Source: Tetramitus jugosus
Taxonomy: Eukaryota; Protista; Heterolobosea
DNA length: 64,000 bases
Assembly: GCA_937625935.1 (NCBI GenBank)
Contig: OW569389.1
Location: 1 to 64,000, forward strand
Direction: 5' to 3'
Positions within the stretch are counted from its first letter, which is position 1; each line of letters begins with the position of its first letter. The notes beneath the pieces were generated by a model, which was not told where the DNA came from, searched no databases, and worked only from the letters and a program-made list of their open reading frames with translations. Shown here in pieces: positions 1-17,337 of the stretch. The position numbers and the translations under genes were made by a program.

Positions 1-771
1 CCAAACCCAAACCCAAACCCAAACCCAAACCCAAACCCAACCCAAACCCAACCCCAACCCAAACCCCCAAACCCAAACCCAAACCCAAACCCAAACCCAA
101 ACCCAAACCCAAACCCAAACCCAAACCCAAACCCAAACCCAAACCCAAACCCAAACCCAAACCCAACCCAAACCCAAACCCAAACCCAAACCCAAACCCA
201 AACCCAAACCCAAACCCAAACCCAAACCCAAACCCAAACCCAAACCCAAACCCAAACCCAAACCCAAACCCAAACCCAAACCCAAACCCAAACCCAAACC
301 CAAACCCAAACCCAAACCCAAACCCAAACCCAAACCCAAACCCAAACCCAAACCCAAACCCAAACCCAAACCCAAACCCAAACCCAAACCCAAACCCAAA
401 CCCAAACCCAAACCCAAACCCAAACCCAAACCCAAACCCAAACCCAAACCCAAACCCAAACCCAAACCCAAACCCAAACCCAAACCCAAACCCAAACCCA
501 AACCCAAACCCAAACCCAAACCCAAACCCAAACCCAAACCCAAACCCAAACCCAAACCCAAACCCAAACCCAAACCCAAACCCAAACCCAAACCCAAACC
601 CAAACCCAAACCCAAACCCAAACCCAAACCCAAACCCAAACCCAAACCCAAACCCAAACCCAAACCCAAACCCAAACCCAAACCCAAACCCAAACCCAAA
701 CCCAAACCCAAACCCAAACCCAAACCCAAACCCAAACCCAAACCCAAACCCAAACCCAAACCCAAACCCAA
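1..771. repeat. Telomere, (CCCAAA)n / G-strand (TTTGGG)n, left chromosome end
   Basis: About 128 near-perfect CCCAAA units start at base 1, with the C-rich strand 5' as expected at a left end. A few variants (CCCAA, CCCCAA, CCCCCAAA) occur only distally (~36-71, ~162-166). Confidence 0.97.
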
Positions 772-1256
772 GTCAAAATCTATTTTCTCATCAAAATCTC
801 AAAATCATCTTAAAACCAATATTTATGCAGGAATACAATGACAGTCTTTGTAAAGCGATGTTATTCTCCTTCATATATCCTTTCATTACTTTCCAAACTC
901 CTTTCCTGTCTTTGTATCCTCTTTGTTTCACTTATTGTATTTATGTTTGCACTCCTTCATCCAAGTTGGACCTGCATCAAAGGAGTTTAAGCTCCTTCAT
1001 CATTCTTTGTTACAAAATATTTCATGTTGTGTCCTTTGCCTTCTCCTTGTCCCACGTTCCTGTTCATCGTCCATCGTCAATTTCATTCACTGCCGGGAAT
1101 GTATTCATTAGGATGTTGTATTCGCCCACAAAGTATTACAATCAAGTTATGAAGGAGTTCAATCTTGTCGTTCAACTGACCCTCTCACACAGCATCTTCC
1201 TTCAGAAGTTCGAAACTCCCTGACCTCAGTCCCAAGTTCCTCTGTCGATATCTTCT

Positions 1257-1478
1257 TAGGCGGAACTATCTGGTTCCTCTTAGACATGTGTGCATTTAGG
1301 CGGAACCAGCTGGTTCCACTGAAAATGTCATATTATAGGCGGAACCAGATAGTTCCACTGACAAAGTCAAGTTTTAGGCGGAACCAGCTGGTTCCTCTGT
1401 AAAGTCGAAAATTTAGGCGGAACCAGATAGTTCCTCTGTAAAAAAGCTTTTCTAGGCCGAAATGCCTGGTTCCGCCTA
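1257..1478. repeat. Subtelomeric array of 24-bp palindrome-containing repeats, period 39-40 bp, ending in an inverted half-copy
   Basis: TAGGC-GGAAC(N6)GTTCC-WCT units at 1257, 1297, 1336, 1375 and 1414, separated by 15-16-bp variable linkers. A degenerate unit at 1453 contains CTGGTTCCGCCTA (1466-1478), the reverse complement of TAGGCGGAACCAG. Confidence 0.93.
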
Positions 1479-1696
1479 TTTTTTCGACACTCATCAGTCA
1501 ATAGCTCCAAGAGATTTGGGTTTTCTGAGTTCAAAACCCAACTCCATATCACAGTTTGGGGGATAGTTCAGAATCTATAGTGAGTTGTTCCATACAAAGC
1601 TTAAGTTGAACATTCCAGACCATAAAGAATACAAAAACAACTTTTACAACGTACAGTTGACTGTATTCAGCCAGTCTTGGCTAGCCGATATGTGAC

Positions 1697-1720
1697 AACC
1701 CAAACCCAAACCCAAACCCA
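1697..1720. repeat. Internal telomeric tract (~3.5-4 CCCAAA units), same orientation as the terminal telomere
   Basis: AACCCAAACCCAAACCCAAACCCA at 1697-1720. Confidence 0.95.
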
Positions 1721-3693
1721 CCCGCATTTCTCTGCCCAATTACTTTCTTCATCTAACTCCATAGTATCCACATAGTCTTCATCATCAGATTCAGATTCAT
1801 CACCAGATTCATCAGGTTGACCATACATTATGTCAGATTAATTGACAAGTATTGATGCACATTCTGCTTCCAGTTCTTCGTCAGACTCGGGATAAATTGG
1901 AGCATCTGGATCATTTTCATCACTCTCAGTTCCAGAGATCACAGATTTATCCAGATCAGATTTGGCATATATTCTCTTGTTGTAGTCGCTCTGCTTCCCC
2001 AACCACTTCAGATCATTACTGCTGCACAGATACACTCGACGAAGAAGTAATAAGAATATCTGTAGATGAGAGTCCTTCTTCTTCCAACCACCACCCTTAC
2101 TTGAAGCATTATCTCGAATTTGAGTGTCGGTAGAATGGAAGGCTTCAGCACCTTGGTTTTGCAGTTGAGACCAAACAAGATCATTATCTGCTTCCTCTGG
2201 AACATGACGAACTATGTAGTGGTAGTAGTATGATCCTTTGACATTGGGGTATCTATAACGAAATACTATTCCAAACGCTTTGCAGCATGCTGAGGAATTG
2301 CTTGTCACGGAGCTTGAGAGTTTCAGAGTCAGCCTCTAGATACACTAAGTGTATATATCTATTCAAGCGTAAGAGAAGAAGTTCGCTGGGATCAGCAATA
2401 TCCTCGAAGGCATGTTCGATATTCATCATCATCTCAGTGATCTGGATACCCCTACTGAATAGAAATCGTTTGGAGGTCTGATCAAAGTTATCATCATCTT
2501 CATCACCTTTCTCCTCTCTCCATTTGAATTTCTTCAGACTTGCATATTGCTTAATCCTGGCTGCAAGCTTGTCATACAGAGTTTGATCTTTCCGACTGAT
2601 GAGTTCTGCATTTGCAATGGAGTATGCAGTATCTAGCAACTGCCCCATTTAATCCATTCTTGAAGACTAGAATTCGAGCATTATATGGAATGTAGTGGCC
2701 AGTGGTTGGATCTGGAGCATATGATCTGTGTCTCTCATGTAATGGACAGTCACAAATTCCACAGAACATGCCATTGTCAAACATGTTGGTGAAATATTCC
2801 AGTCATTGACAACATACAGCTGGCATTGGAGGAGTTTGTCCTTGTATTGCATGCCATTCAGGCTCACGTTCGTCAGTCCAGGAAGGACTTTATGGAAATG
2901 TGATTTGAACTCTTGCTCACCCTCATCACCAGAATACATGGAAAGCAGAATACAGGAGTCACGAGATTGTACAGCAAAAACTTTGCAGTTCAGATGAGAT
3001 ATAGTGAAGACGACAATCCCTTTTGATCCATCAACAGATGCTTTGATCTTCAATACGTCATCCAGATTCCCATGGTGATTCTCTTCTATCTGCAACAATG
3101 CCTTCAGAACAGGAAGGTAGAATGACCTTGGCCAGTTGCTCTGACTACATTGCATTTCTTCCTTCTGGAATTACCCTTTCGAGGTATTAGTTCGCCTGAT
3201 TAGAGCAGGAGAATTATCAGAGTTTGATAGTGGAATTGCATCACTTGAAGCAGTAGTCTGACTTGGAATCAGAAGACACTGGATCAAGGCTGGAGCTGAT
3301 CTGTTGTGCGTTGTTCTCAACTGGAGCTGCGGTGGCCTCAGATACCATTCGTGTAGGCTCATAGTGGAAAGCATTGATAACTTGTTGATTCAACTTTTGT
3401 CTGCGCTTGTCGATTGTATTCTGGTGCTTCAAGACGTTCACGAAGTTGAAGTACGTTCTCAGAGCTGCGTATTTCTGTAAACTAACGAGGTACCAATCTA
3501 AGAAGTAGATAGTACTATTAGTATCGAGATGAAGGAGAGTAGAATTTAGAGTGATGAGTGTGAACTTTCTCATTTCGATATGCTTTCTTGTAGATTTGGC
3601 CATTACTTTGCCCAGAATAGCTTTCAAATCATGGATATGATGAAGATAGTAGTATGCAATCAACTGGACTCTACTGTCCTTATCACGTACCAC
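1721..3693 (-). mobile_element. Frameshifted RAG1/Transib-like (RNase H-fold DDE) transposase pseudogene, 3'-truncated by the telomeric tract
   Basis: Consecutive minus-strand ORFs give, in order: IKASVDGS (D at 3030-3032), QSRDSCILLSMYSGDE, YVVNDW (D at 2802-2804), FCGICDC (2746-2763), FRYRYPNVKGSYYYHYIVRHVPE (H at 2219, 2204) and QNQGAE (E at 2144-2146), then an acidic tail. This is the RAG1 motif order. At least 4 frameshifts and 2 in-frame stops. Confidence 0.8.
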
Positions 3694-4113
3694 AGAATCA
3701 ATGAGGGTAGTATGAGCTTGCTCTCATTCAACAACGAAATCTCTCCATCATATCCAGATTATCTCTGTAACTGGTGAAAATCATCAAGTCAAGAGAATTT
3801 CAAGTCAATCAGAAATCATGTCCTGGAATGCAACTCAATCCGCTTAAAAAACAACAAAAAATGACTGAAATAACAGATTTAATGCTTCAAAAGAATGTAA
3901 AGGTCTAAAATCCCAGTCTATAATCTGAAAAAACTGTTCTCTTATCAGTCCAGTGTTAATCTCATTCTTTTCTGAAAAATCCTGTCATAAAGGTCTGTTG
4001 CTGTTTTAATCTTGTTGCAGTTAAAATCTGTTAATTACAGTAGAGATAGATCGTCTCTTAGAGACGATAATTCTCAATACCGCCACACTGTTCCGTACTG
4101 TCAGATGAAGCCG

Positions 4114-4630
4114 TCAGTGGGAAAGTGTAAATAATTCTGTTAGCAATCTTACTGAAAACCAGACTGGTTTGTCCTTCGTTGTTTCTGCCCATTCAGAGAA
4201 CTTTCCCGGTACAAGATTGTTTCCTCCAACACTAGTTACTTGGGTTGTGCTGACCTTTGACTTGAATTTCTCATACTTTTCCTTATCGTAAGAATGTTTT
4301 TTAGCAGCTTCAATGTCAAGCTGAGAAAGTAGATGAAAGTTAGCAGCAGCATCTATATCTACATGTGCTTGTTCCAAGTATTCTCTACTCTCTTTGTCGA
4401 TGGCAAAACTCTGTACAAAGAGTTCATATGCATCTGGGTCGTATCTATCGAAAGGTAGTTTTGAAACGGCGTTTGTAAATTGAGTTGACAGCTTCATTCC
4501 CGGAGCATAGGTGCCCAACTTCCACCAAGTAACCTCAGAGTAGGTATAAATCGTGGAAAACTCCTTCTCGATAGTCTGTTTGATCATATGTCTAACCTGT
4601 TTTGAGTATGAAAAGCCTCCAGTGAAGTCT
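4114..4630 (-). pseudogene. MACPF (perforin-like) domain fragment with the central signature deleted
   Basis: FTNAVSKLPFDRYDPDAYELFVQSF and VTSVGG...FSEWAETTKDKPVWFSVRL match the MACPF flanking motifs. The GTH(Y/F)-x6-GG segment that should follow FVQSF is missing, and there is no credible start. Confidence 0.72.
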
Positions 4631-5318
4631 TTTAAGAAATATTTACATTCAAGAATATGGAGTTGTTCTGAGTCAGAAAGGGACTCTAGAAGCACAAGTA
4701 TACCAACTTGGAACTCAGTTGAACCATGCACGTGCAACTCTTCAGTCTAATGTGGGAAATATTGATTCGGGCACAACTAAAATAGAGGGTGCATGTCTCA
4801 CAACAGATAACCGCAGCAGCAGGGACTGAAGTTCAGTTATCAAATAAGGATACCAACGGTTTTGATATTGGCGAAAGGATGAAGCAGATCTGTCAGGACT
4901 TCTTGTAAAATGTGCCAAAAAGGAGACTTTGACGTTGCTGTGAATGACTACAGATCCGTGCATGGAGTGTATGAATACAGATGAAGTATTCGTACTGGGT
5001 AAACCGTAGTCAGCGGAATTATTGACAGATATGAAGCTTCAATAAAGATTACTTTTTATTGGTGTTCATACTTGAGTAGTGCAATGGTACGTGCAATCGC
5101 GTCAGTTACTTTCTCATCTACTAGTTGTCGATCGATGTGCATATGGCTTCTTATCTTTCAGTACAACTCTGATGTACTTGCTTTGTTTTGTTGTCATTTG
5201 ATACTCAGTCAACAATTACACAACACATGGAATTTATAAGCATAGAGTTTACAACGAAAGTGTTGGACGAACTCCTGTTTGTAAGAAATCACGCAAAAAA
5301 ACAAACAAACTCATAGTT

Positions 5319-8932: not shown

Positions 8933-9619
8933 GTGCTCCATATTCCTCCATTCACAGAAAGCCGTGACTTGGTCTCTGCTATAAGGGACAATAGCTTTGC
9001 CAAATTAATCACTACCATTGTAGTGAATGGCAATGAACCACTCTTGTACACGTCGACTGTTCTCTTTACCTTGAAAAAGAACCCTTGTGACACTAGTGCA
9101 GGTGAACCGACATACTCACTACAGTTCCATTTGGGTAAAGCCAATTCTCACTGTCAGTTGATGGCAAGTGGAGCAACAGGCACGATGAAACATCTTGTAT
9201 TTTTCAACGGACCACATGCATACACTTCTCCAAAAATCTACCCAGAAACCATTCAAAGCAAATCTGTTCCAACTTGGAACTATGTGCAGGTTCAAGTTGA
9301 ATCAAAATCATTGAACGAACAACAATTAATTTCTTCTGTTTATGACTTGACAGAAATTTATGAACCAGAAGCTTATGAATTATGGGATAACGAAAAGGTA
9401 GATCCTGCGTAAAAGAATGGCTTACTGAAGGGAATTATTGGATTTGAAATCAAATGTGATCATATTAAGGGCAAATTCAAGTTGTCTCAAAACAAGTCAC
9501 AAGAAGCTATCCAACAAGTGATTAAAGGATTGAAAGCAACAAATGAGTATGAAACTACAGCATCTATGAACGTGACAGAGTGGATGGAAAAGGTTTCTGT
9601 GAAAGATGTTAGCTCATAA
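8933..9619 (+). pseudogene. paiB: PaiB-family FMN-binding split-barrel (negative transcriptional regulator-like) pseudogene
   Basis: HIPPF, FHLGKAN, FNGPHAYTSP, VPTWNYVQV, then after an in-frame TAA (9410-9412) LLKGIIGFEI...GKFKLSQNK to TAA at 9617-9619. No ATG start. Confidence 0.85.
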
Positions 9620-9762
9620 AATATGCGTCAAGTGCAAGGTTATTGGACCTGTTGCTTGCTTGGTCTTGCTTCGGCATACTTCATGGTACTCTGTTCTCTT
9701 TTTGTGTGGTAGGCGGTAATACAGTCTGATTAAGAAAGGCTTGCAGTTTATAAATTCAATGT

Positions 9763-10464
9763 TTAACATTCAGATGGGCAATATGATGGAACAACATAGC
9801 TACTATCTTTTGCGTGAGGAGTAAAATCAAAGTATTCAATGGTCCTTGTGGCAACAGAGTCATAACTTCCAGAAGAACTGATGGTACGACTGGTAGTTTC
9901 TTGATGGATCATTGCACAAAGTGGTACTTGTGGACGCTTGTCAAATATTTGTGCAATGTTGTCAGTGTGGACTTGCACCGTTGATTTTCCAGCTCTTTTC
10001 TTTTTTCTTGCGTGATACAATTGAGCTTGGAGTCCAACACCAATTGATATCTCTCTATCGTACTTAAAATCATCAGACACACAAGTGATATATAAAATAT
10101 CAGATGGCTTAGTAGTTCTTCTGCATGAGCAATCTGTTGCATTAAAGACGTACTCGTATCCGAGCAGTGTGTACTTGTCTGTGATGAATCCAAGGGTCGT
10201 ACCCTCTGGGAATGGTCCTTGATTGGCTGGGTACTCTTGATGGAAGTCAATACGATACCTATAGTTATCGAAATCAGGGTAATGCGTGTACGTCATTACA
10301 GATGCACTGTTCTGAGCACAATAAACACCTGAGGAGCATTGAGACGCAGTCATGGAAGAGTCACGTACGGAGACCTTGTGACCTCTTGGCATACAACAGT
10401 AGTACTTTGAGTGAACAAGAGCGAATAGTGCCAAGAATAATGACAGTGTGAGGATGAGTTTCAT
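9763..10464 (-). CDS. Secreted ependymin-related (EPDR) protein
   Basis: Signal peptide, CCMP, YPDFDNYRYRI, CSCRR, CVSDDFKY..ISIG, CAMIHQE and YFDFTP..DSSYVVPSYC give the EPDR cysteine pattern. Intact 233 aa. Confidence 0.75.
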   Translation of the reverse strand: MKLILTLSLFLALFALVHSKYYCCMPRGHKVSVRDSSMTASQCSSGVYCAQNSASVMTYTHYPDFDNYRYRIDFHQEYPANQGPFPEGTTLGFITDKYTLLGYEYVFNATDCSCRRTTKPSDILYITCVSDDFKYDREISIGVGLQAQLYHARKKKRAGKSTVQVHTDNIAQIFDKRPQVPLCAMIHQETTSRTISSSGSYDSVATRTIEYFDFTPHAKDSSYVVPSYCPSEC

Positions 10465-12573: not shown

Positions 12574-15500
12574 TTATTGAGAACTTTGTTCTGTTCTTGT
12601 AACCAACATCACAAGTTTCCTGATAGTCGAATTTCTAATCAATTGTTCAATTGTAATTCTTTTCCCAAACACTTTTTGGATAGTTTCGACAAATATTGGA
12701 TAAGTGAGCGAAGTGGCACCCAAATTGATAAAACTTTCGTCGATTGAAATCTTTTCAATATGAAGAATTGAAGTCCAAACATCACACATTTTCTTGTGGT
12801 CTGGTGTTTCTGGTGCCACGTATTCACCCAACAAATTTGATTTGTCAAATCTTTGATTTGGCATTGGTAGTTTGTTTACATCCACCTTTCCATTCAATGT
12901 TTCTGGAAACTTTTCCATGTGAATTATGAAACTTGGCATCATCCAGGATGGTAATGTTGATTCAATATGTGACCTCACATTTTGTTCTTCATCTGACATA
13001 TAGTATGCAATTAAATACTGTTGATCCAAAATCGTTCTGGTCATCACAACCGCCCTTTTCACACATGGGTGACTTTCGATGGTGCCTATTAATTCATTGA
13101 CTTCGATTCTGTGTCCACGAATTTTTACTTGAAAATCTGTTCTGCCCAAAAATTCGAACTCTCCATCAAAATTCAATTTCACTAAATCGCCTGTTCGATA
13201 CAATCTTCCATCAAGTGTATTCACAAATCTTTGTTTGGTTAATTCATTTTTCATCCAATATCCATCTGCAACACCAATTCCACCAATAAACAGTTCCCCA
13301 ACAGAACCACGTGGAACTAAATTCAAGGTTTCATCCATTACATAACAAACAGTATTTGAAATTGGTTTTCCAATGGTAATCGAATCACAACTTTCAATTT
13401 TCTTGCACAATGACCATATAGTTGTTTCTGATGGTCCATAAACATTGTAGACTTTTGATGTTATCATTAATAATTTTTCGCAAATCTTTGACGTCAATAC
13501 TTCACCACCAACAAGAATAGTCATGTCATTGTTGGGTTGAATATGTGTTCCAATCAAAGAAAATAAAGTGGGTGTTGCTTGCAGAACTGTTGGTTTTTCT
13601 GCATTGATCCAATCAACCAAGTCAACAGGGTTGGAGGCAACACATACTGGACAAACCATTAATTGACATCCAATTATCAGTGGCATAAAAACTTCAAGCG
13701 CCATAATGTCAAACGAAATACTTGTGAGATTCCACACTTTGTCACTCTTCCTCAAATTCAGTCTCTTAGAAAAATATTGGATGACATTCATAATCGAGTT
13801 GTGTCTGATGATACATGCCTTTGGAGCTCCAGTTGATCCAGATGTGTAAATAATGTATGCAATGTTATTGGGTGTCGAATGTTCGATATTTTCTCGCAAT
13901 GTTTTTTCAAGAAGAATATCATCGAGCACCAATATGTTTTGTGCATTTTCCAGTTTAAGAGATGATTTTCTTGTTGCAATTACCAGTACTGGGCATGAGT
14001 CTTCTATCATATAATTCAAACGGTTGATTGGATATGTTGGATCCATTGGTATGTAGCAAGCACCAACCTTGAGGATTGCCAGCATTACCACAATCATATC
14101 ACAACTTCTGTTCATGCATATTCCAACGCTATCACCACATTTTACACCAAATTGATTCATGATGATATGTGCTAGATGATTGGACATATTGTTTAACTCG
14201 AAATAAGTCAATGTTGCGTCCATATAACGTCCATCAGGTGTTGAATATCTAATAACGGCAAAATTTGGTGTTTCTTTTGCCCTTCGATCAATTTCTGCTG
14301 TGATTGACAAGGTTTCTGGCCCATTCAAAATTTCGCCATGTCCAATTTTTTTGATGCAACTCAATTCGTCTTTTGACAATGTTGAAATTTCACTCACTGG
14401 GGTGCAACGATTTAGTTTGTCCAAAAGTTGTTCCAGAATGTGCCCATAGTTCCGCAACATGGAATTAACGAACTTGTCAGAGTAGATACAAGAATGTTCA
14501 ACATCAATCAACAAGCTTCCGTTGTCCAAGTACACATTCCAGCACATAGGGAACATATTTGAATCATGGTGAATATCAATTCTTTCGACTTTCGTGTCTT
14601 TTAAAACCAGTTTAGAATCGCTCTCCATGTTTTGCATCACAAACATCAATGTTGCAGGGTGCATTTCTGAAAACTGCTTGCAAATTGAAAGAATGTCTCT
14701 AAACCCAATTCGTGTATGATCCATTGACTTATGAATGTTTGTGGTGACCAGTTCAATCAAATCACTCAATGTCATTTTAGGATTGATTTTGTTTCTGGCA
14801 ATCATTGGTAAAACTAGCAGTCCAACAGTATTCGATACATATGATTCACCTCTCAGTGCCACTTCGGTGCCAATAGAAATGTCACATTGTCCAGTGTATT
14901 TCAACAACATTAAATTCAAAGAACTTAATAGGACTGCATATGGCGTACAATGAAATAGTGCACAATAAGTTTGCAATTTAGTGCCTATGTTAAATGTCTT
15001 CTTTGTTCTCATACCACCATTCTGTTCCTTGTCACCTTTTAATACCAGTGGTACAAAACCATTCAAATAATTGTTCCAGTACTCAACATCTCTGTAACTG
15101 ATTGAGTTGTCCAAAACAAAATTGCGATAACTGGCAAAATCATTTTTGTTGCCAACAGAAATTTCAGTGCAATATAGATTCGAAATTTTTTCAATAAGGA
15201 GTCTCTCTGAGAATGAATCAATCACGATTCCATGTTTGACAATGATGAGTACATGATGTTTTTCATCCATGCTGTTCCTCAATATTTCAACTCTGACCAG
15301 TGGACCATCACTCAAACAAAATGGATACTGAATAATTTTTGTTGCCTCACTCAACATGAAATCTGGATCAACAATTTTTGGCTCCAACTTGAAACTGAAT
15401 TCGTGTTTTGGTGATTGTTGTAGTATTCCATCGTTCATTTCAATAACACACCTGAGAGCAAAGTGTTGATTAAAAACTGTACTCAATGTTGATTCAAGTG

Positions 15501-17337
15501 CACTCACATCCAATGTCCCCTTGATTGAAAATATTAATGGCAAGTTGTATAAAGGACTTTGAGGGTTCAGCTGTTGGTGATTCCAGACTTCTATTTGGGT
15601 GGATGTCAAGGGCAACGGTTCTAATGTTTCATTACTACTCAAATGTTTTGGGTTACATTCAGGTTTGATGTACTCTACAAATTCTGATACAACTGGATGA
15701 CGTAAAATATCAGAGACCGAAATATTGTATCCTGATTGTGACAGTAACGACGAAACCATTTGGGCAACCATTGAATGGCCACCCAACTCCAAAAAATTGG
15801 CATCACGACCAAGTCCATCCATCTGAAACACTTGTTCAAAAATCTCGACAACAATTTTTTCTAGAGGTGTTTTAGGAGGTTCGTATGAAGTGTTTTTGAT
15901 GCTTGGTGGTTCCAACTTCATTCTGTCTACCTTTCCATGTGCATTCATTGGGAGATGTGTCATACTGACATAATGACTTGGCACTACTGCTGGATGAAGA
16001 TGCTCCTGGAGATGCAAACGAATTTGTTGGCCTCGGTTCTTTCCATTTGAGCAATAATACACAACCAAATATTTTTGATTGTTGGCAGAATTTGTGAAAC
16101 ATCTAACTGCACACTGGCTGATGTTCGAAATCTTGCCCACCAAACTTTCAATTTCTTCAATTTCGATTCTCACTCCTCTAATTTTCACTTGGTTGTCCAC
16201 TCTCCCAATAAATTCCAAGTTTCCATCACAATTCATTCTTACCAAGTCTCCCGTTTTGTATAGTCTACCATACTTTGTCTCAACAAATTTTTGATTGGTA
16301 TAATCGGTCATGCCAAAGTAACCACGTGCAACACCCAATCCACCAATAAACAATTCACCCTCAGAGCATGTATTCATGGATTCGTCGAATATGTACAAAT
16401 CATAACCATCAAATGGTTTTCCAATAACCGATGGATCATCTCCATTCTTAAAAAAATGAAGAGTTGCACCAATTGTAGTTTCTGTTGGACCATATCCGTT
16501 TACCACAGTTCGATTTCCATCACACCAGAACTCCATATTTTTTGAATCAGCCATGTCTCCCATCACAACCAACATTGATAATGAAGGTAAATCCTCTTTG
16601 GGCATCAAAGACAGAAATGCAGGTGTCACACTTACCATGGTAATGTTGTTGTTCTTGATGCATTTATGGATGTCACCAGGTGACAAACAAATTTCATCAT
16701 CTGCAATGTACAAAGTGGCCCCATTGAAGATGGATAGATATATGTCCCAACCAGCTGCATCAAAACCCATGGAAATATAACTCAAAAGTCGCGAATTGGA
16801 GGTCACATGACACAATCTACTGGCACTTTTGATGAAATTTATGATTGAGTGTTGTTCGATCATAACACCTTTGGGTTTTCCCGATGACCCTGATGTGTAA
16901 ATAATGTACGCCAGGGTTGATGAATCATTTGGTTGAACAGATATTTTGGGTGCAGACTCATTCACCATAACGATGGATTTCTGTGCCAGTTTGTCCAAAA
17001 AAATTGCTGGTACAAAATCATCAATTATCATCAATGCTGGATTTACGTCAAGTAAAATATGTGTTAACCTTTCTATGGGATATGATGGATCAAATGGCAC
17101 ATAACATCCTCCAATTTTCATAATTGCCATCATCACTGAAATTAGTTTCCACCCTCTGCTCAAACAAAATCCAATCGGTGTCTCTTGGATTGGTGTTTCC
17201 ATCTTGTCGAGAATCAATGAACACATCCTTTCCGTGTGGTCATAAAGTTGCTGGTATGTTATATGTTCACCCTTGGAAACAATTGCAATCTTGTCAGGGT
17301 GTTGTTTGCATACGGAAGAAAAAAGGCTGTGTATCAT
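12574..17337 (-). CDS. Two-module non-ribosomal peptide synthetase, A-T-C-A-T, intronless, no TE/R domain
   Basis: Two full A-domain motif sets (YTSGSSGKPKG/YTSGSTGAPKA, YGPTE/YGPSE, YKTGDL/YRTGDL, GRxDxQVKIRG, GKVD), two carrier motifs (LGGHS, LGATS) and a C domain (LTSTQ..W, YNLP, HFALR, HGIVIDS). Confidence 0.97.
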   Translation of the reverse strand: MIHSLFSSVCKQHPDKIAIVSKGEHITYQQLYDHTERMCSLILDKMETPIQETPIGFCLSRGWKLISVMMAIMKIGGCYVPFDPSYPIERLTHILLDVNPALMIIDDFVPAIFLDKLAQKSIVMVNESAPKISVQPNDSSTLAYIIYTSGSSGKPKGVMIEQHSIINFIKSASRLCHVTSNSRLLSYISMGFDAAGWDIYLSIFNGATLYIADDEICLSPGDIHKCIKNNNITMVSVTPAFLSLMPKEDLPSLSMLVVMGDMADSKNMEFWCDGNRTVVNGYGPTETTIGATLHFFKNGDDPSVIGKPFDGYDLYIFDESMNTCSEGELFIGGLGVARGYFGMTDYTNQKFVETKYGRLYKTGDLVRMNCDGNLEFIGRVDNQVKIRGVRIEIEEIESLVGKISNISQCAVRCFTNSANNQKYLVVYYCSNGKNRGQQIRLHLQEHLHPAVVPSHYVSMTHLPMNAHGKVDRMKLEPPSIKNTSYEPPKTPLEKIVVEIFEQVFQMDGLGRDANFLELGGHSMVAQMVSSLLSQSGYNISVSDILRHPVVSEFVEYIKPECNPKHLSSNETLEPLPLTSTQIEVWNHQQLNPQSPLYNLPLIFSIKGTLDVSALESTLSTVFNQHFALRCVIEMNDGILQQSPKHEFSFKLEPKIVDPDFMLSEATKIIQYPFCLSDGPLVRVEILRNSMDEKHHVLIIVKHGIVIDSFSERLLIEKISNLYCTEISVGNKNDFASYRNFVLDNSISYRDVEYWNNYLNGFVPLVLKGDKEQNGGMRTKKTFNIGTKLQTYCALFHCTPYAVLLSSLNLMLLKYTGQCDISIGTEVALRGESYVSNTVGLLVLPMIARNKINPKMTLSDLIELVTTNIHKSMDHTRIGFRDILSICKQFSEMHPATLMFVMQNMESDSKLVLKDTKVERIDIHHDSNMFPMCWNVYLDNGSLLIDVEHSCIYSDKFVNSMLRNYGHILEQLLDKLNRCTPVSEISTLSKDELSCIKKIGHGEILNGPETLSITAEIDRRAKETPNFAVIRYSTPDGRYMDATLTYFELNNMSNHLAHIIMNQFGVKCGDSVGICMNRSCDMIVVMLAILKVGACYIPMDPTYPINRLNYMIEDSCPVLVIATRKSSLKLENAQNILVLDDILLEKTLRENIEHSTPNNIAYIIYTSGSTGAPKACIIRHNSIMNVIQYFSKRLNLRKSDKVWNLTSISFDIMALEVFMPLIIGCQLMVCPVCVASNPVDLVDWINAEKPTVLQATPTLFSLIGTHIQPNNDMTILVGGEVLTSKICEKLLMITSKVYNVYGPSETTIWSLCKKIESCDSITIGKPISNTVCYVMDETLNLVPRGSVGELFIGGIGVADGYWMKNELTKQRFVNTLDGRLYRTGDLVKLNFDGEFEFLGRTDFQVKIRGHRIEVNELIGTIESHPCVKRAVVMTRTILDQQYLIAYYMSDEEQNVRSHIESTLPSWMMPSFIIHMEKFPETLNGKVDVNKLPMPNQRFDKSNLLGEYVAPETPDHKKMCDVWTSILHIEKISIDESFINLGATSLTYPIFVETIQKVFGKRITIEQLIRNSTIRKLVMLVTRTEQSSQ

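Follow-up and report, generated by a model that had tools for sequence, protein, structure and literature searches.

Chapaev elements, as described in Repbase, duplicate 3-4 bp of their target. The CACTA/Mirage/Chapaev/Transib (CMCT) clade as a whole has target site duplications (TSDs) of 2-5 bp, and the C(2)C and H(3-4)H motifs are common to all of its transposases (PMC12730594); for Transib the length of the duplication varies from 2 to 5 bp (bioRxiv 10.64898/2026.08.26.747230). Insertion that leaves no duplication has a precedent in Spy, which belongs to an unrelated group (PMC4122938). RAG1-like genes are already known outside animals, as a complete RAG1L/Transib element has been published from Aureococcus together with fragments from other protists, and Transib from fungi, plants and bacteria (PMC9435367). 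An earlier sequence-only reading of the locus described here had placed a RAG1-like transposase in a probable discoban, far from the animals in which such transposons are mostly described. The host is indeed a discoban, Tetramitus jugosus, but the surprise was overstated, given the published occurrences in a stramenopile, fungi, plants and bacteria. The searchable supplements of PMC9435367 contain no discoban name, and a Discoba family of RAG1-fold transposons, including any mention of Naegleria with Transib, was not found in the literature searched.

The window, a stretch of 64,000 nucleotides, forms the left end of contig 46 in the T. jugosus assembly (paTetJugo1.1, 26,350,207 bp; PMC11106597) and contains a decayed transposase fragment in five pieces at 1724-3675 on the minus strand (Table 1). 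We propose that this is, in all likelihood short of certainty, an internal remnant of a cut-and-paste DNA transposon that carries two genes, is found in Heterolobosea and belongs on the RAG1/Transib/Chapaev side of the CMCT clade. The reference for the pieces was an intact 1020-aa open reading frame (ORF) on contig 26; the pieces were searched separately, with the intact ORF as a proxy. By tblastn the pieces are colinear with this ORF (E 1e-125), tiling residues 308-906 in order with 61% identity over 541 codons. The differences at the three codon positions number 184/109/313, and as they are mostly at third positions, the frame of the window copy was under selection before it was broken.

The fragment had been described as six frameshifted ORFs, whereas we find five to be homologous and the ORF at 3171-3374 to have no match to the intact protein. 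Likewise, the lesion that seemed to call for a single restored nucleotide at about 2797 is a 10-nt deletion (~2800) relative to the intact copy, and it is joined by deletions of 26 nt (~2600) and 2 nt (~2291) and by stops within the linker at 3111-3300 and at 1838-1840. Nor does the element end at 1838, since the match to a copy on contig 38 extends to 1724. As the deletions measure 10, 26 and 2 nt in an assembly of QV 56.7, we reject the explanation that the frameshifts are artefactual. The motifs quoted in the sequence-only reading are all found on the minus strand in the order given, with the H-x4-H-x19-E spacing intact and with none of the three acidic residues or the four zinc ligands missing. 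In a family alignment of 95 rows they are nearly invariant (first D 58/60, second D 69/69, cysteines 70/72 and 71/71, histidines 78/80 and 82/83, E 72/74). The colinear alignment to the intact ORF, together with the near-invariance of these residues in the family, indicates that the motifs of the window did not arise by chance.

Table 1. Features of the transposase fragment and its subtelomeric surroundings in the window
Feature	Position	Strand	Remarks
Piece 1	3301..3675	-	aa ~308-432 of intact copy; helical region N-terminal of catalytic core; 44% identity to contig-26 ORF
Linker	3111..3300	-	between pieces 1 and 2; not alignable, stops and frame change
Piece 2	2802..3110	-	aa 459-564; RNase H strands, first and second D; ends at 10-nt deletion
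First D (SVDGS)	codon 3032-3030	-	
Second D (VNDW)	codon 2804-2802	-	
Piece 3	2602..2799	-	aa 569-634; CxxC and conserved His of C-x-L-H-x-K-x-R; ends at 26-nt deletion
CxxC cysteines	2763 / 2754	-	
His of C-x-L-H-x-K-x-R	codon 2619-2617	-	
Piece 4	2292..2597	-	aa 645-746; helical zinc-binding insertion; 71% identity; ends at 2-nt deletion
Piece 5	1841..2290	-	aa 748-~906; H, H, catalytic E, start of acidic tail; gapless against RAG1 H/H/E segment
H / H / E of H-x4-H-x19-E	2221-2219 / 2206-2204 / 2146-2144	-	
Remainder of acidic tail	1724..1840	-	after in-frame stop; last bases of the element; 83% DNA match to contig-38 copy
Junction	1694..1723		short telomere-like repeat tract replacing the 3' part of the element; tail end, second gene and right TIR lost
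Distal subtelomeric module	772..1720		outside element; common to ends of contigs 51 (95%) and 32 (82%)
39-bp tandem array	about 1256-1476		near-palindromic units, in distal module, core of the array at 1295-1443; also at contig 32 end
Telomere, (CCCAAA)n	1..771		
Subtelomeric repeat	3722..4118		replaces the 5' part of the element; near ends of ~20 contigs; N-terminal ~300 codons and left TIR lost

That the copy is dead and its 3' side lost, as previously suggested, is confirmed by the deletions and stops and by the match to the contig-38 copy, which ends at 1723 where the telomere-like repeats start, while the contig-38 copy itself continues. No terminal inverted repeat (TIR) or partner gene is left in the window copy. 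As the module at 772-1720 is common to other chromosome ends, the 3' junction is either a break that healed and was lengthened afterwards by recombination, or the product of a direct exchange with such a subtelomeric module. The repeat at 3722-4118 was considered as an end of the element and rejected. Having lost both TIRs, its N-terminus and its partner by replacement of both ends with subtelomeric modules and telomere-like repeats, the window copy is immobile. On the far side of the repeat at 3722-4118, and broken at it, lies a fragment of a MACPF/perforin-domain gene (4114-4737, minus strand; Pfam E 2e-9), and an intronless NRPS-like gene of 1587 aa with the domains A-T-C-A-T is found at 12574-17337 on the minus strand.

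Single-sequence Pfam and PDB searches with the window pieces and the intact protein gave no match, and word-indexed homolog searches returned nothing or close fragments only. A two-sequence profile matched only RAG1 in the PDB (E 0.06) and recovered 203 relatives from a 1.8-billion library. With the 95-row profile the PDB matches were RAG1 (E 6.5e-7) and BbRAG1L (8e-4) and no others, the second D, the CxxC and the H/H/E segment being aligned. Fold prediction from a single sequence reached a pLDDT of 34; the AlphaFold2 model of the intact core reached 89.6. When this predicted core was compared to solved structures, RAG1 ranked first (Z 22.1, 422 residues, 4.0 A), followed by BbRAG1L (20.9), HzTransib (15.7), the P element (13.0) and Hermes (8.5), and Foldseek gave E 6e-11. 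The predicted core thus has a RAG1-type fold, and the earlier assignment to a RAG1/Transib/Chapaev-type transposase is borne out.

The likeness to RAG1 could nevertheless reflect the choice of available structures, RAG1 and Transib being the only ones solved for the clade, in which case the family would be an ordinary lineage related to Chapaev or CACTA. No CACTA or Chapaev structure was among the PDB matches to the core model, and we know of none that has been solved. Models in the Atlas fit the core equally well or better than a RAG1 fragment (TM 0.65), namely those of a rotifer protein (0.79), a Mucoromycota DUF1280 protein (0.72) and a plant CACTA Transposase_21 (0.72), and as the CACTA and DUF1280 models fit about equally well, any placement of the family within the CMCT clade is provisional, the more so as the tree, built by a quick method, contains no named RAG1L, Transib or Chapaev sequence. 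Moreover, the DDE triad with C(2)C and H(3-4)H between the second D and E is found here as in all CMCT transposases (PMC12730594), and distant matches extend to Glomeromycota proteins. Against such a lineage, the Pfam matches among family members lean to RAG1 (six members, best 6e-6) over DUF1280 (two) and Transposase_21 (one), there is neither a Chapa domain nor a 2-4-bp TSD, and the partner is not TnpA-like by any search; we regard an ordinary Chapaev- or CACTA-related origin as possible but rather unlikely. Of the Chapa zinc finger, judged by Cys/His content rather than with a Chapa profile, only a lone CxxC was seen in the N-terminal alignments. A CxxC and basic helix preceding the core resemble, by eye, a nonamer-binding-like domain, with no profile match in the PDB. 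Two of 16 members matched KilA-N at E 0.005, which is only suggestive that the N-terminus may be KilA-N-like. Some relatives carry additional C-terminal domains, a Zn2Cys6 and, by eye, an Ulp1-like protease stretch.

When the genome was searched with two of the pieces, the intact contig-26 ORF and other relatives were recovered. Named relatives occur in Naegleria gruberi, N. lovaniensis, Willaertia magna and the amoebozoan Planoprotostelium; none was detected in pattern-based scans, of low sensitivity, of viral, metagenome and prokaryotic contigs, nor among viral structures. Intact elements measure 3.5-4.2 kb and are composed of a 12-14-bp TIR (5'-CAA..), the transposase, a tail-to-tail partner gene of ~220-290 aa and the second TIR. 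The contig 26 element is 4,167 bp long with a 14-bp TIR, and its boundaries are demonstrated by the copy on contig 32, which breaks off exactly at the same ends, and by a groundwater run, in which contigs end exactly at these ends and an element-free form begins at the exact left junction. The termini read 5'-CA..TG-3', intact relatives beginning with CAA or CAC; the window copy lacks both ends. The CAC-starting, RSS-like TIRs about which the sequence-only reading had asked were not found, as the main clade begins with CAA and no RSS-like CAC heptamer is present at the termini, a CACAGT string occurring only inside the contig-26 TIR.

A second Tetramitus family includes five copies on five contigs, identical over the compared DNA, and a sixth left end, and N. 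lovaniensis harbors three copies at >98% identity. These five to six identical Tetramitus copies and the three of N. lovaniensis demonstrate recent spread. In all five copies of the second family an in-frame TAA (2305-2307 in the locus of one copy) separates a 184-codon N-terminal frame from a 742-codon frame, and the surrounding sequence can be aligned to intact relatives; movement despite the stop might be explained by mobilisation in trans, by splicing or by a downstream start. The 15-nt left end of this family matches the host genome at 182 places with up to two mismatches, compared to 21 for a control, and the excess may reflect a motif that is common in the host or else old solo ends. 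On contig 4 (469552-475422) two related elements lie back to back, and both are accompanied by a partner gene of their own. It could be argued that the contig-26 ORF, which is single and may be transcribed, is a domesticated host gene. TIRs, multiple insertion sites and element-free alleles speak against domestication, and polymorphic insertion contradicts it; together with the assembly artefact dealt with above, we find this explanation scarcely credible.

Five elements with both ends (contig 26, three of N. lovaniensis and one Logan contig) and a single-copy candidate were inspected for target duplications, and none of the six has one of at least 2 bp; a 1-bp match of the flanks in two elements is within chance. 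Hence the 2-5 bp typical of CMCT elements, the 3-4 bp of Chapaev and the 5 bp of RAGL and Transib are all absent. The empty site of one N. lovaniensis copy, a paralogous locus, continues through the joined flanks without an extra or missing base; it is the one site compared base by base and comes from a Naegleria relative outside the subfamily of the window. The 5-bp duplication raised as a check in the sequence-only reading is therefore rejected on the flanks of the elements and on this exact join. The sole ambiguous case is contig 26, where three of four flanking bases match, as a 4-bp duplication that has since mutated might do; the groundwater run would be consistent with a simple join at this site. 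At the contig-3 copy no match was found to a pattern of a 4- or 5-bp duplication with a CAATAC right end, a weak result as the sequence of the right TIR is not known.

As to the mechanism, by analogy with RAG and HzTransib a transposase dimer would probably bind both TIRs and free blunt ends by nicking and flank-hairpin cleavage. From the footprints we lean toward a model in which both 3'-OH ends attack phosphates that lie directly across from each other, at zero stagger rather than 5 bp apart, such that host repair would only have to ligate. The duplications might be missing for another reason, namely either a normal staggered attack whose products are trimmed afterwards, whether by the partner or by the repair machinery of the host, or integration from a circular intermediate, and the invariant His, Tyr, Arg and Glu residues of the partner could conceivably be catalytic. 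Yet trimming is expected to vary, whereas no base is gained or lost at the empty site and the ends are exact in all copies, and we consider such a route improbable.

The partner is encoded by a convergent ORF that follows the transposase in the contig 26, identical-family, Naegleria and Logan loci, and in the T. jugosus genome it lies tail-to-tail beside the transposase at 11 places. Its copies are homologous at 27-32% with a conserved core of ~130 aa, and it has no Pfam, PDB or Atlas match and no sign of kelch repeats. A small local search recovered a homolog of the partner in a sister clade (E 2e-5) and in Planoprotostelium (E 2e-7), in both cases as a tandem gene upstream. In a run that looks like RNA and is not recorded as such, contigs cover both genes, with gaps between them. 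On an ENA metagenome contig a 339-aa gene resembling 2OG-Fe(II) oxygenases (9266-10285, minus strand) is convergent to a sister-clade transposase; with a weak Pfam match, an HxD..H..R motif and, by eye, a TET/JBP-like appearance, it is at most a candidate for inclusion in the element, and it recalls the TET-carrying CMCT elements of fungi (PMC12730594).

The gene on the lost side of the window copy had been thought to be RAG2-like. As a convergent orphan gene is conserved in the intact relatives, it is this orphan, and not RAG2, that the window copy has lost; a RAG2 partner is rejected on the Pfam, PDB and Atlas searches. The possibility that the family is a true RAG-like (ProtoRAG) transposon, its second gene a remnant of RAG2 and hence directly informative on the origin of V(D)J recombination, draws on the tail-to-tail layout of the two genes, on RAG1 being the best match in solved structures and profiles, and on the upstream tandem partner of the sister clade, as reported for AanRAGL (PMC9435367). 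However, the small orphan partner, the 12% identity to RAG1, TIRs that begin with CAA, the lack of a 5-bp TSD and the lack of a RING or Chapa zinc finger make it very improbable, and the direct bearing on the V(D)J recombinase that had been suggested is not supported. Instead, the most likely role of the partner, which we hold at about even confidence, would be that of an accessory subunit or regulator that came to occupy the position of RAG2 by independent capture.

The window copy is thus a fossil fragment of an undescribed CMCT-clade variant, and the family, which falls outside RAGL, Transib and Chapaev by their defining features, would yet work like a RAG1/Transib-type transposon. Tentatively, and at somewhat less than even odds, we suggest an undescribed protist lineage of RAG1-fold transposons, in Heterolobosea with an amoebozoan relative, that integrates at zero stagger and depends on a non-kelch partner protein of its own, making it a second, independent two-subunit transpososome of the RAG1 type, one that moves cargo and leaves no footprint. 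If the footprint holds, the RAG1/Transib scaffold can integrate without target duplication, extending the known range of 2-5 bp to zero, and the structural control of target stagger becomes testable against the strand-transfer structures of RAG and HzTransib. The conserved partner would be evidence that capture of a second gene by RAG1-type enzymes happened on more than one occasion. Apart from being truncated at telomere-like repeats, the fossil itself contributes little; the significance is carried by its intact relatives, recently active in culturable amoebae and all annotated as hypothetical proteins.

Compared to RAG1 and RAG1L (ProtoRAG BbRAGL, AanRAGL), the family has the same core fold in the predicted model (Z 21-22 over ~420 residues), the DDE, CxxC and H-x4-H-x19-E, and a two-gene organization that is mostly tail-to-tail and tandem in one clade; it differs in its low identity, non-kelch partner, 12-14-bp CAA TIRs and missing 5-bp TSD, and in having no NZD/RING and possibly a KilA-N-like N-terminus. 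With Transib (HzTransib, subgroups I/II, the Nozomi group) it shares the fold (Z 15.7), the motifs and short TIRs, but Transib elements have a single gene, whereas the family has a conserved second gene, no duplication and no terminal heptamer of the CACAATG type. Chapaev/Chapaev3, DUF1280 and EnSpm/CACTA elements have the same 5'-CA..TG-3' termini and zinc motifs and Atlas models at TM ~0.7, but make 2-5-bp TSDs (PMC12730594), and the Chapa domain is absent from the family. Spy is likewise a TIR/DDE element without TSD (PMC4122938); unlike Spy, which is related to PIF/Harbinger-IS5 and targets AAATTT, the family has neither a PHIS-type transposase nor that target, combining a RAG1-type fold with no evident target motif in five junctions.
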